In this document: positions 24,320 to 39,449 of the stretch, one piece after another
Position numbering within the stretch: position 1 is the first letter of the stretch
How the letters are laid out: each line of letters begins with the position of its first letter
Notes under the pieces: generated by a model
What the model was told of the DNA's origin: nothing
The model's input: only the letters and a program-made list of their open reading frames with translations
Database searches by the model: none
Position numbers and translations under genes: made by a program
Origin: Pavona decussata
Taxonomy: Eukaryota
Direction of reading: 5' to 3'
Assembly: GCA_977016875.1 (NCBI GenBank)
Contig: CDRNST010000104.1
Span: 3,782,001 to 3,846,000 of the forward strand
Length of the DNA: 64,000 nt

Positions 24320-24875
24320 ATGTCTAAAATTGAATACAACAATATACTTTTTCAAATAAGCCGGAGACTGGAGGAGCTGGATGTACGCAGACAGCTACTT
24401 GCCATGTGCAGAGGCAAAATAGCGTCTCGAAGCGAAGACAATATGCAAGATGTCTTCTCGCTGTTTGAGGAACTGGAGGAGAAGGGCTTTTTAGGACCTG
24501 ACAACCTTGAGATGGTGAAAGAGCTACTGGAAGGTGTAGAAGAATGGCATCTCTTTGGAAAAGTCGAAAACTGCGAAAGTAGAAGAAAGGAGTACATGGA
24601 TTTCCTTGAACCGATCATTCGAGCGCTCGACGAAATCAATGATTTGGAACGGCTGCTTTCTATGTGCAGAGGGAAGATACCAGAAGAAAGCCAAGGCAAC
24701 ATCAACGATACTCGGTCATTATTCGACGTGCTAGAGGACAATAACTGGCTAGGAATTAATCGTCTCGGCATTTTGAAGGAAATTTTGACCGAATTGGAGA
24801 AAGAAGATCTGGTAAAGGAATTGGAAGAATTCGAGAAACGAAGGCTTGAAGACAAGAAGTCTAAAAGTAGAAAAG
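24320..24875 (+). CDS. Exon 1 of paralog 2: two tandem death effector domains
   Basis: Two ~85-aa repeats with the DED pattern (Y..IL.QIS..L....L..MC..KI......LF..LE....LG.DNL..VKELL / KEDL..LEEFE). Confidence 0.9.
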
Positions 24876-36800: not shown

Positions 36801-39449
36801 ACGTCATGCACATGTTATAACCAATCTTCGTCTTCGACCATATCATCTACATCATCGAACTCTACCTGGTGAGATGTTGGTGCACTGCCTTGCTTTCTCT
36901 TAATAGATTGAAAAGTACGCCTCTTCCTGGTTTTTCGACAGGTACTCTTGTCTTTTAAACAATAGTGTGTTCTCCACCGTTGGAGCAATTCACATGTCGA
37001 TGGCAGGCTGCTGCATGAGGATCAGCTTTACATCTCGACTTTTCAGCTGCATCAAATCTTGCTTTTATAGAATCCTTTATTTAATAGGGTACTGGAAAAA
37101 CCATGTAACTGTTTTATTAGGGAAATGATATATGGATTGAAAGTGCATTCTACACTGTCATTCATCACAAATGCTGATTGAGAGATCTAAATCGCAAACT
37201 CAAAACACTGCCATACCAAGTGTGCCAATCAAAACATCCTTCATTAAAAAATACCTATACAATAGAATACACAAAAACTATAACTGGATATACACTAGTC
37301 ATTGTAAAATGGAAAGCTGGTGTCGTAGTCCTGTTGATACAAAAATTCTGCTCTCGGTAACGTTACAGCCATAACTGACAGAGGAGCGAAAAGCTGTGCG
37401 ACTTCTGGTAACCTTCAATAACACTTGAAATAGTTTCGGTTATATGTGATATTGCATCGCAAGCACCAAAACAATTCCATTTTTGCTGGATATTTTTGTA
37501 TTCTTTTCCAAATAGAGGGAAAGATTAATTGTCTTTATACAATTTATAGTTTTTGAGTTTTTAATTTTCGCGCAGAAGCAACTGAAATTCTGCGGTGCGT
37601 AATTTAAGGAAAATTGAGTTACGCCTTAGCAAGTGCTTGTTTTTATATGCTTATATCTCGTTGGATATTCGTTGTACAGGGCTTTTTTTTTAATCGTCAG
37701 TGTATTCTTTTCCGAATTCAGTGAATGGTTAAGCTTTTCCATACGATTTATATTACTGGTGTTATAACCTTGCGCGCACAAGTCATTCCATTTACCGTTA
37801 ATAAATTGAATTCGAAATTAGTTATAAGGCAATGTATGGGAATATGTTAAAAACATGCGCAGTAGACATGAAATGCAATTCACAGTAAGACAGTAGCAGA
37901 TATTTAGTGAGATATATGTTAAAGCAACAGATGAAGCATGTTGGTTTAAGTTTGTTCAACTTGTATACATTACAATTTTAAAAGAAATGTATGAAAAATA
38001 ACGGCAATGCGCAGTAGTTACGAATTTAACGTAGGACAAAATAATTCAAAGAGAAAAAAGCATACTTATAAAATAAAGAAACGAACGAAATTTCAAAACA
38101 GTACAATAAAACAGCAAAAAAATACTGCAGTTTCCAATTTACAAGGAAATGTATGGGAAAATGACGAAATTAAACACATGCGCAGTAGATGTGAAATGCA
38201 TGTACAGCAAATACAGCAGGATATATTAAAAGCACGTAGTGAGATATATGTCACAGCAAAGTTGAGAACATTACAATTTTAAGACAAATGTATGAAAAAA
38301 CTACTCTATGCACAAAAGTTACAAATTGGCATAATAGGCTAGTTGAGATGACTCGACTGATAGACCAACTTTACACAGTGATTTGTAGAAGTCTGCTCTT
38401 TACAGCGTCCCCCAGAGGTCACGGCTATATATCATCTCTTATCCAACGCGCGCTCGTGGAATAATTGTTTTAAATTATCCAGCTTTAAAACTTAGAATTA
38501 CATTTCTTTTACATACACCACCCATCAATATTTCAATTCTAGGAGTATGAATGTTTATCACATGAACCTACATCAACGAAATCAAAGACAAAAGGTTTGG
38601 GACAAATTCTCATTTTGACGTTTCCCTACGCCTTGACAAAATCACGGTACGCGCGAACGAAAAATATCCCTTCCCTGACCACCACTCATCCGTCTCCATC
38701 CCCAAACAAAGTTTAGCCCGTGTAAGGAAGGGTGTGTATGTGTGGGGGTTTCCTTTGGCTTTTTCTTTAACCCTTCCCCCCTGCCACTCTACATGTGCAC
38801 AGGCGACAGGCTATTGTAAAGTCCGATGCGAGATGCTTATTTTTCTCCACCCTCCCTGTCCATTCTTCCGCATGACTCTTTCCTCTTTTAATTCCTTTCA
38901 TCTTCTTCTTCTTGAATTGAGAAATGGGTGAAAGTAACTTCATCATGTTTAATGGGTTTAATACGTCTCATTTAACACATTTGTTTGCAGCCTGAATTGT
39001 TGTGATGCAACTTCATTGATCCTTTCTTTTCTCTTTCTGCTGCAGATGTAAAATCTACCTTTTTTGCCATATTTGAAATAGATGAATGTGAACCCCTTCA
39101 CTGGAGGGAGTCCTCTGATATGTCAAGATCTGTAACAGAAAGGTTGGCCGAAATTCCGGATTGTACGAAATTATTAATAACTTCTCGTAACAGTGACGGA
39201 CCAAATATTGCGGAAACTCTTCGCGTGTCCTATTATCCTAACAAAGGTATAAGGGATAATGTTGTGGCCACCATCCTTGAGGTTTTTTACAAGCGCTGGG
39301 AGACACTGGACATAGTTTCAATGATGAAGGAGGTTGAAAGGACAGTCAACAGAAGTAGAGAACGTTTCCGTAGAGGTCTCTCACAGGTGCTGATAACTGA
39401 TAGTTTGTCTACTCTCCCCAGACTTCAGAAGACGGAGGAAGATCCATAA
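24320..39449 (+). CDS. Paralog 2 (complete, ~790 aa): tandem DED, TRADD-N-like, death-domain-like and catalytically dead caspase-like protein; exons 24320-24875, 25236-25292, 31177-31554, 32161-32379, 33770-34528, 39046-39449
   Basis: Exon lengths 556+57+378+219+759+404=2373 nt, open from ATG to TAA, with canonical GT-AG introns all in phase 1. Domain motifs recognised by eye. Confidence 0.8.
27343..29807 (+). pseudogene. hAT transposase with TTF-type zinc finger; single -1 frameshift near 27760
   Basis: RSFQPAWF..YKWLHY......FCHIC, then GFSNWK...HESS..H, DETAD, YDGA, HCYGHALNL, TRW, and the C-terminal dimerisation motif ATNAVSERSFSALKRVKTYLR. Confidence 0.9.
29874..30246. mobile_element. 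MITE inserted in the 3' region of the hAT
   Basis: TAGGGAGTTAAAGAT ... ATCTTTAACTCCCTA terminal inverted repeat. Confidence 0.75.
30820..31058. mobile_element. Harbinger-like MITE; related partial copies at ~10212-10460 and ~13637-13690
   Basis: TIR GGGCCCGGTTGTTCGAAAGCCGATTA. Confidence 0.8.
35130..35882 (+). mobile_element. L2/CR1-group LINE 3' remnant
   Basis: KSLGVTIDD.LDW, HFDYCNIVWG, KLQNRAARVL, GLAPNYL...YNLR...PRTNY...YSGAILWNSLP; AATAAA tail. Confidence 0.85.

Follow-up and report, generated by a model that had tools for sequence, protein, structure and literature searches.

A six-exon stony-coral gene predicted to encode tandem DEDs, TRADD-N, a death domain and a probable pseudo-caspase tail in one chain

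The DNA considered here is a stretch of 64,000 nucleotides of the 602-Mb genome of the coral Pavona decussata (contig CDRNST010000104.1, below C104; C104:3782001-3846000), referred to as the window. It holds an intact six-exon gene on the forward strand (24320-39449), with an open reading frame (ORF) of 790 codons plus a TAA stop and a predicted product of 790 residues. This protein probably opens with two death effector domains (DED) and a TRADD-N domain, which a conserved linker separates from a death domain; it would end in a dead caspase-fold domain with an inserted helical hairpin, and would be a non-catalytic scaffold or regulator of death-fold signalling. The best explanation of the data is that it is cytosolic and belongs to a stony-coral family within a lineage-specific expansion of proteins with DED and a TRADD-N domain of the DEDD2 clade.

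The positions of the exons and of the elements within them are collected in Table 1. The six exon lengths (556, 57, 378, 219, 759 and 404 nucleotides) add up to 2373, that is, 790 codons plus TAA. The five introns all start with GT and end with AG, giving ten canonical splice sites, and all the junctions are in phase 1; the codons split by them encode A, E, V, D and D, none being a stop. The small exons 2 and 4 were placed by their conservation in paralogs and homologs. The exons were analyzed one by one, and full-length homologs served where a continuous chain was needed. Chance can be excluded as the source of the gene: at nine or more paralogous loci of this genome, and in more than 20 annotated proteins of other stony corals, five to six of its exons recur in unchanged order.

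Concerning the N-terminal half of the protein, exon 1 matched PF01335 (DED) in two stretches (Pfam, E 8.4e-26) and is colinear with residues 1-185 of full-length coral homologs, with 57-64% identity. Exon 2 is the only sequence separating the DEDs from TRADD-N; of its 18 residues, 16 recur at residues 187-204 of P0144, a homolog known from a transcript, the junction codons A and E match as well, and the exon is kept in the two closest paralogs. Exon 3 matched PF20694 (TRADD-like_N) with E 1.2e-7 and 31.9 bits, against a gathering cut-off of 23.7; the conserved GS motif of TRADD-N lies within ISEGSV (31326-31343). It is 60-73% identical to homologs of Acropora, Montipora and Stylophora, which Kaur et al. 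2021 (eLife 10:e70394) place in the class TRADDN-DEDD2. The cnidarian expansion of DED plus TRADD-N proteins of the DEDD2 clade is marked by an N-terminal Death-like domain, usually a DED, with TRADD-N directly after it, an order found here. Exon 4 is conserved at 46-67% in all the paralogs examined, and also in other corals. A motif at 32256-32327 is kept across stony corals, formed by a small helix (FV.xYL), S.TTE.SDSG and then a further SE.G.E; the residues of the window are EFVHRYL at 32256-32276 and TTETSDSG at 32304-32327. This may be a phospho-dependent or cleavage-related linear motif. Exons 4, 5 and 6 gave no Pfam match with E values up to 10.

The death-domain region of exon 5 yielded nothing with Pfam or HMMER, nor did the family profile against PDB chains. 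An AlphaFold2 model of the residues of the window itself (33772-34074), built with 80 homologs, reached pLDDT 85 and displayed, in the first 84 residues of the exon, a helical death-fold bundle. In an exhaustive comparison with the PDB (VIA), all 50 best chains were death-fold domains, in the order: MyD88/IRAK4/IRAK2 complex (IRAK2/MyD88), Z 9.6; Pelle, 9.0; NF-kB p105, 8.8; and the MyD88 filament, 8.8. DEDs followed with Z of at most 8.2, and PYD and CARD were also lower than death domains. Foldseek likewise put death domains on top, with weak E-values. The modelled residues thus form a six-helix bundle of ~85 residues superposing on solved death domains, and the fold of the start of exon 5 can be taken as settled at the level of the model. 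The subfamily call, death domain rather than DED, depends on a margin of ~1 Z unit and on the label 'Death' given to homologs of this part by Kaur et al.

The fold of the tail was modelled on residues 495-817 of the homolog P0146 (323 residues), with an alignment of 69 rows in which the end of exon 5 and exon 6 of the window, as well as paralog exons, were included as separate rows. The AlphaFold2 model (pLDDT 88, pTM 0.82) runs through strand, helix, strand, two very long helices, strand, helix, strand, short helix, strand, helix, helix, strand and strand. With Foldseek, the 50 best PDB chains were all caspases (E 4e-5 to 2e-3). With VIA, run against 48,161 representative structures, the top positions were occupied by pro-Sf-caspase-1 (Z 16.2), Dronc (15.8), caspase-8 (15.6), the protease-like domain of cFLIP-L (3h13; Z 15.5, root mean square deviation 2.9 A, 178 residues aligned), caspase-3 (15.5), CED-3 (15.5), caspase-9 (14.7) and caspase-4 (14.6). 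After the caspases came MALT1 (13.9) and a metacaspase (13.2), with GPI transamidase, CHAT and legumain below them (12.5-11.6); unrelated structures began at Z of at most 9 and matched only the helical hairpin. The caspase superpositions (Z 14.6-16.2) cover 172-188 of the 323 residues, the hairpin being excluded. The model contains a six-stranded sheet, beta1 to beta6, and five helices in caspase order, and the exons of the window align to every one of these elements. The hairpin (helices 55-101 and 111-171 of the model, ~100-120 residues, between beta2 and beta3) differs in length among paralogs. It is the region labelled 'Coiled-coil' by Kaur et al., and on the model it reads as an insertion inside one caspase-fold domain. 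The model supports the interpretation of the tail as a predicted caspase-fold domain, that is, as a pseudo-caspase.

At the places of the catalytic His (after beta3) and the catalytic Cys (after beta4), the window has IDE and SRN. Among 29 aligned tails of the family, no column reached 30% of either His or Cys, while SHG and QxCRG are invariant in ten real caspase domains of the same genome. The tail is therefore read as a protease-dead caspase-fold domain, and conventional protease activity is excluded for a protein whose caspase fold is devoid of the catalytic dyad. Conservation in the tail is highest over alpha4, alpha5 and beta6 (KRW.TLD..SMM.E..R and LS.LPRF). In caspases this region is the dimer face, and its conservation in the family fits pairing with a caspase domain, without demonstrating it. 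A homodimer prediction for the P0146 tail scored 0.00, gave no answer and counts for neither side. A different assignment of the tail, a degenerate P-loop or NACHT-like NTPase with VLIVD..GRGKR as Walker A, FFAIFEIDE as Walker B and LLITSR as sensor 1, was rejected: GRGKR and TSR are not conserved in paralogs, and the fold search returned caspases.

Most of these features had been proposed in an earlier note drawn up from the sequence alone, which described six exons splicing into an intact ORF of ~790 residues, two DEDs in exon 1, a TRADD-N-like domain with the ISEGSV pattern in exon 3, a death-fold-like helical module opening exon 5, and a tail threading onto a caspase fold with both catalytic residues missing. 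All this agrees with the GT-AG introns in phase 1, the two PF01335 stretches, the PF20694 match above cut-off, the exon 5 model matching only death-fold structures and the lack of conserved His or Cys among the 29 family members. The motifs quoted in it (VLIVD, FFAIFE, IPDCTKLLITSR, ILEVF...LDIVSMMKEVERTV and ITDSL) are present where it had placed them. The check with AlphaFold and Foldseek that it advised came out, on the P0146 tail, in favour of its threading, and secondary structure agrees strand by strand: on the model, FFAIFE would be beta3, KLLIT-SR beta4, ILEVF...MMKEVERTV alpha4/alpha5 and ITDSL beta6.

Concerning transcripts, the whole architecture runs uninterrupted on a Logan contig of 3463 nucleotides (P0144) and on a JGI contig of 4301 nucleotides (P0146), from two other corals. 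These contigs are intron-free while the genomic loci have introns, so they are spliced transcripts and all the parts belong to one chain there. For the gene of the window, the joining of exon 1 to the downstream exons is a prediction drawn from homology, exon phase and colinearity.

Two sets of observations weigh against the interpretation given above, one on the RNA of the locus and the other on the caspase likeness of the tail. As to the first, positions 24300-30299 were compared with RNA contigs of three metatranscriptome runs, all from a single study on a coral ~6% divergent from the reference; the RNA runs containing the locus carry the label coral metagenome. In all three, the contigs start at 24303 or earlier and continue without splicing across intron 1 and exon 2 as far as ~25450-25490, and within this range no spliced joint was seen at the exon 1 donor (24875). 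A further contig in one run lies at 25545-25620, so that the unspliced cover takes in the first 150-330 nucleotides of intron 2; no RNA contig covered 26100-26700 or 27500-29500, also in intron 2. The k-mer depth of the unspliced contigs, 17-42, does not correspond to genomic DNA, since the runs have only 0.4-0.6 Gb on a genome of 600 Mb; exon 1 is therefore transcribed, as intron-retaining or prematurely ended RNA. As for the junctions, which the earlier note proposed to confirm by RNA sequencing, the whole chain is spliced in two other corals, and the RNA at the locus shows exon 1 unspliced.

These data bear on the possibility that the DED exon is used mainly or only in a short RNA with intron 1 retained and its end within intron 2, with the downstream exons separate or rarely joined to it. 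Such a transcript would encode a DED-DED-only protein of ~195 residues (ORF 24320-24907), similar to cFLIP-S or the viral FLIPs. The depth of the contigs, their colinearity with the genome without any break at 24875 and the two uncovered stretches of intron 2 speak for it. However, contigs show presence and not absence, as minor forms are dropped, and the runs come from a single study on a divergent coral. Moreover, exon 2 lacks a start codon and matches, at 89% identity, a stretch lying between the DEDs and TRADD-N in a spliced transcript of another coral, all the junctions are in phase 1, and the exon order is kept in at least nine paralogs. Short and long isoforms could also coexist, as they do for cFLIP. 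An exclusively or mainly DED-only use of exon 1, the foremost alternative, is considered unlikely, and the unspliced RNA of 24303-25620 may be either a DED-only short isoform with a cFLIP-S-like product or pre-mRNA.

As to the second set, PF00656 (Peptidase_C14) was not matched, at E values up to 10, by the exons of the window, the full-length homologs or the 29 aligned tails. The family profile gave no match against PDB chains, and exons 5 and 6, compared by sequence with PDB chains, retrieved nothing relevant. With hhalign, the family against the ten real caspases of the genome gave a best E of 1e-3 with probabilities of 10-19%, and beta4 of the family was placed on caspase beta5, a register that is not trusted for this strand. 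In the absence of a significant caspase signal by sequence methods, the equivalence of residues at the catalytic sites depends on the order of secondary structure. Besides, the fold was modelled on a homolog, P0146, which is 37-42% identical to the window over exons 5 and 6.

It could then be argued that the caspase likeness is convergence or a modelling artefact; on this view the tail, 'domain1' of Kaur et al., would be some other alpha/beta domain and its function would have nothing to do with caspases. In addition to the lack of significance by sequence, three-layer alpha/beta sandwiches are widespread, and those authors gave no caspase label with sensitive profile methods. Nevertheless, two independent structure searches had on top only the caspase-hemoglobinase clan, within which true caspases preceded paracaspases, metacaspases and legumains; Z was 16, against at most 9 for unrelated rows; and the six strands and five helices are all in caspase order. 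The alpha4/alpha5 stretch is the one aligned by hhalign with the real caspases of the genome (E 1e-3, probability 19%), and the alpha4/alpha5/beta6 region resembles them in sequence (VF...T.D..SM...V, then the terminal strand). A language-model feature search of the ESM Atlas, a weak lead, also landed on caspase clusters (0.83), and a tandem DED at the N-terminus usually goes together with a caspase-8-type domain. Altogether, convergence or artefact seems quite improbable.

The genome contains at least nine colinear paralog loci, found by searching it exon by exon with the DED exon, the TRADD-N exon and exons 4, 5 and 6. They form a cluster of ~330 kb on both strands (C104:3489000-3821500), with one further locus at C273:3394600-3436400; per exon, identity to the studied gene is 29-69% across the cluster. 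Genome-wide, the DED exon had 16 matches and the TRADD-N exon 39, and at least nine loci include the caspase-like tail. In other corals this DED plus TRADD-N module also occurs in front of other tails, among them glycosyltransferase, Argonaute and TPR. Many paralogs sharing one front module with differing tails are the expansion pattern of Kaur et al. The tandem cluster, the paralog identities of 30-69% and the rapid divergence of the paralogs would fit a role in immunity or conflict. A second gene of the family lies within the window (Table 1); its DED exon is upstream of the window (C104:3772432-3772986) and carries one in-frame TAA. Elsewhere in the genome (G000:C77, ~0.92-0.95 and 1.46-1.62 Mb), full Peptidase_C14 matches (937569-938093, 1507619-1508176 and 1615953-1616543) occur within 10-20 kb of TRADD-N exon matches (920986, 947589, 1487563, 1518995 and 1606449), an arrangement suggesting candidate fusions of TRADD-N with a live caspase domain.

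Outside this genome, exon 5 retrieved 142 relatives when 1.84 billion representatives were scanned in full with HMMER, mostly single-exon fragments and some full-length. Full-length homologs of 766-829 residues were found in Stylophora, Acropora, Montipora, Porites and Oculina, whereas the models of Orbicella and Pocillopora are shorter. Colinearity with the exons was seen for more than 20 annotated proteins of Acropora, Montipora, Porites, Oculina, Orbicella and Pocillopora. All the homologs found in the database searches come from stony corals, and their NCBI name is 'uncharacterized protein'. Two Stylophora proteins, XP_022808330.1 (P0044, 829 residues) and XP_022789524.1 (P0145), align to all six exons. 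No annotated model of exactly the gene of the window was found in protein database searches.

That the gene could be a decaying copy in a fast-turnover cluster, intact by chance and no longer functional, has very little probability: the TAA in the DED exon of the neighbouring paralog, a TGA in exon 5 of another paralog, a hAT transposon inside intron 2 and the lack of spliced RNA at the locus point that way, but the six exons are open with ten canonical splice sites, the conserved motifs (ISEGSV, that of exon 4, KRW.TLD..SMM and LS.LPRL) are retained, the transposon is confined to an intron, and exon 1 is transcribed in a close relative.

Table 1. Features of the window, with positions counted from its first nucleotide
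Feature	Position	Strand	Basis or remark
Exon 1: ATG start and tandem DEDs, 185 codons + 1 nucleotide	24320..24875	+	donor GT at 24876
Exon 2: linker exon of 57 nucleotides, phase 1-1	25236..25292	+	pyrimidine tract and AG acceptor, GTGAGT donor
Exon 3: TRADD-N domain (DEDD2 clade, RRM-like fold)	31177..31554	+	PF20694 match
Exon 4: linker exon with conserved short helix and acidic Ser/Thr motif	32161..32379	+	AG/GT sites, phase 1-1
Exon 5: death domain, then start of predicted pseudo-caspase domain and hairpin	33770..34528	+	models, alignment to homologs
Exon 5, first part: predicted death domain	33770..34023	+	AlphaFold2 model built on this sequence
Exon 5, middle: beta1-alpha1-beta2 of predicted pseudo-caspase domain	34075..34212	+	alignment to modelled homolog P0146
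Exon 5, end: long helical hairpin (coiled coil) at caspase alpha2/alpha3 position	34213..34528	+	homolog model
Exon 6: beta3 to beta6 of predicted pseudo-caspase domain and stop	39046..39449	+	acceptor AG 39044-39045; TAA 39447-39449
beta1 KVSVLIVD	34102-34125	+	P0146 model secondary structure over alignment
alpha1 helix	34141-34185	+	P0146 model over alignment
beta2 EVTTIS	34192-34209	+	P0146 model over alignment
beta3 STFFAIFE	39054-39077	+	then IDE where caspases have SHG
beta4 KLLIT	39168-39182	+	then SRN where caspases have QACRG
beta5 ETLRVSY	exon 6	+	P0146 model over alignment
alpha4 DNVVATILEVFYKR	39255-39296	+	P0146 model over alignment
alpha5 LDIVSMMKEVERTVN	39306-39350	+	P0146 model over alignment
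beta6 VLITDS	39387-39404	+	P0146 model over alignment
Second gene of the family	9468-18795	+	exons open, 57-86% identical to studied gene
Second gene, TRADD-N exon	9468-9845	+	
Second gene, exon 4	11064-11207	+	
Second gene, exon 5	12655-13515	+	
Second gene, exon 6	18385-18795	+	
Assembly gaps (N runs)	23605-23768 and 51664-51901		

Mobile elements were observed at three places of the window. Intron 2 holds, at 27316-29807 (+), hAT-type transposase ORFs (DUF4371 and hAT dimerisation domain) with flanks at 27100-27370 and 29850-30300. Contigs of RNA and DNA runs join ~27195 to 29847 and ~27369 to 30009, skipping ~2.64-2.65 kb, and the flanks have very high depth; these joints probably reflect non-autonomous copies of the element that lie at other sites of the genome and have lost their interior. 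At 2915-6205 (-) there is an ORF of 1096 residues of a long terminal repeat retrotransposon of BEL/Pao type (DUF1759, Peptidase_A17, RVT_1). Finally, open stretches at 35082-35775 (+), in intron 5, are 48-62% identical to intron stretches of another paralog (L021) and have no Pfam match; they look like a decayed retroelement fragment.

Concerning function, the protein would act without catalysis, as a cFLIP-like scaffold or regulator of death-fold signalling, a role inferred by analogy; the earlier note had suggested a possible all-in-one adaptor or decoy. The tandem DEDs would dock it on DED assemblies of the FADD/caspase-8 type (DED filaments), the death domain would place it on death-domain oligomers, and the TRADD-N sheet would present an additional surface for binding proteins. 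As for the dead caspase domain, it would pair with the protease domain of a live caspase, or replace one, thus tuning or blocking activation as cFLIP-L does with procaspase-8. These docking and pairing roles are extrapolated from what is established for FADD, caspase-8, cFLIP, TRADD and DEDD2. Corals regulate cell death in bleaching, disease and symbiosis, and to our knowledge the coral extrinsic pathway described so far consists of FADD and a single caspase-8. A more extensive proposal, tentative and on balance rather doubtful, is that stony corals have expanded pseudo-caspases amounting to a death-inducing signalling complex (DISC) in one chain, with the modules of caspase-8/cFLIP (tandem DED), TRADD/DEDD2 (TRADD-N) and FADD/TRADD (death domain) added to a dead caspase domain. 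These would pair with live caspase-8 and, through long forms and intron-retained DED-only forms, would serve as fast-evolving switches between apoptosis and survival/NF-kB signalling in infection, symbiosis and bleaching.

If the caspase interpretation of the tail is right, pseudo-caspases with tandem DEDs exist beyond vertebrate cFLIP, and there are many in corals. With three kinds of adaptor domain per protein, they are concrete candidates for tuning caspase-8 activation. The caspase interpretation also gives a testable identity to the published 'coiled-coil + domain1' tail of the TRADD-N catalogue, and it uncovers a blind spot of annotation, as Pfam and the NCBI name 'uncharacterized protein' miss the tail domain wholly.

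Among known systems, cFLIP-L (CFLAR) and procaspase-8/-10 share with the coral protein an N-terminal tandem DED and a C-terminal caspase-fold domain; in cFLIP-L, as in the coral protein, that domain lacks the catalytic Cys. The cFLIP-L combination of tandem DED and protease-dead caspase fold in one chain was seen in transcripts of other corals and is predicted for the gene of the window. In contrast to cFLIP-L and procaspase-8, the coral protein has its DEDs separated from the caspase fold by TRADD-N, the conserved linker and the death domain; it also has a hairpin of ~100 residues after beta2, and lacks a Pfam Peptidase_C14 match. The likeness is one of domain layout and modelled fold, sequence similarity to caspases being too weak for a tree-based orthology with CFLAR or CASP8. 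DEDD2/FLAME-3 also has a DED followed by TRADD-N of the DEDD2 clade (per Kaur et al.), but only one DED, no death domain and no caspase-fold domain. Vertebrate TRADD has TRADD-N and a death domain in one chain, but neither DEDs nor a caspase fold; moreover, the classic TRADD-N (PF09034) is vertebrate-only according to Kaur et al., and exon 3 matched PF20694 only. With regard to corals, Moya et al. 2016 (BMC Genomics 17:62) described in Acropora one tandem-DED caspase-8 and the pseudo-domain-bearing caspase-X, the present family being undescribed there. Caspase-X is likewise coral-restricted, with a caspase domain without His and Cys and a proposed cFLIP-like role, but it has two Peptidase_C14 domains detectable by hidden Markov models, one of them active, and no DED, TRADD-N or death domain.

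The earlier note knew of no described protein with this combination of domains, and in this it was mistaken, because the combination was already catalogued. Kaur et al. reported that TRADD-N proteins of the DEDD2 clade have undergone lineage-specific expansion in cnidarians, to 17-168 copies, in which the DED plus TRADD-N module is constant while the flanks vary, and their Figure 4-source data 1 lists Stylophora pistillata XP_022808330.1 and XP_022789524.1 under this architecture. In that table the tail is given as 'Coiled-coil+domain1', without a caspase call; 'domain1' is not mentioned in the main text, and the deposited 'domain1' alignment consists mostly of oyster sequences with a different-looking pattern. 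No paper calling these coral proteins pseudo-caspases was found in the literature searches made. The two Stylophora proteins, homologous to that of the window, have the same domain order, similar length (820-829 versus 790 residues), colinearity over the six exons at 30-89% identity and the same pattern of expansion in corals; they differ in belonging to another species and another paralog, and in the published label of the tail. What appears to be new here is the predicted caspase-like nature of that tail.

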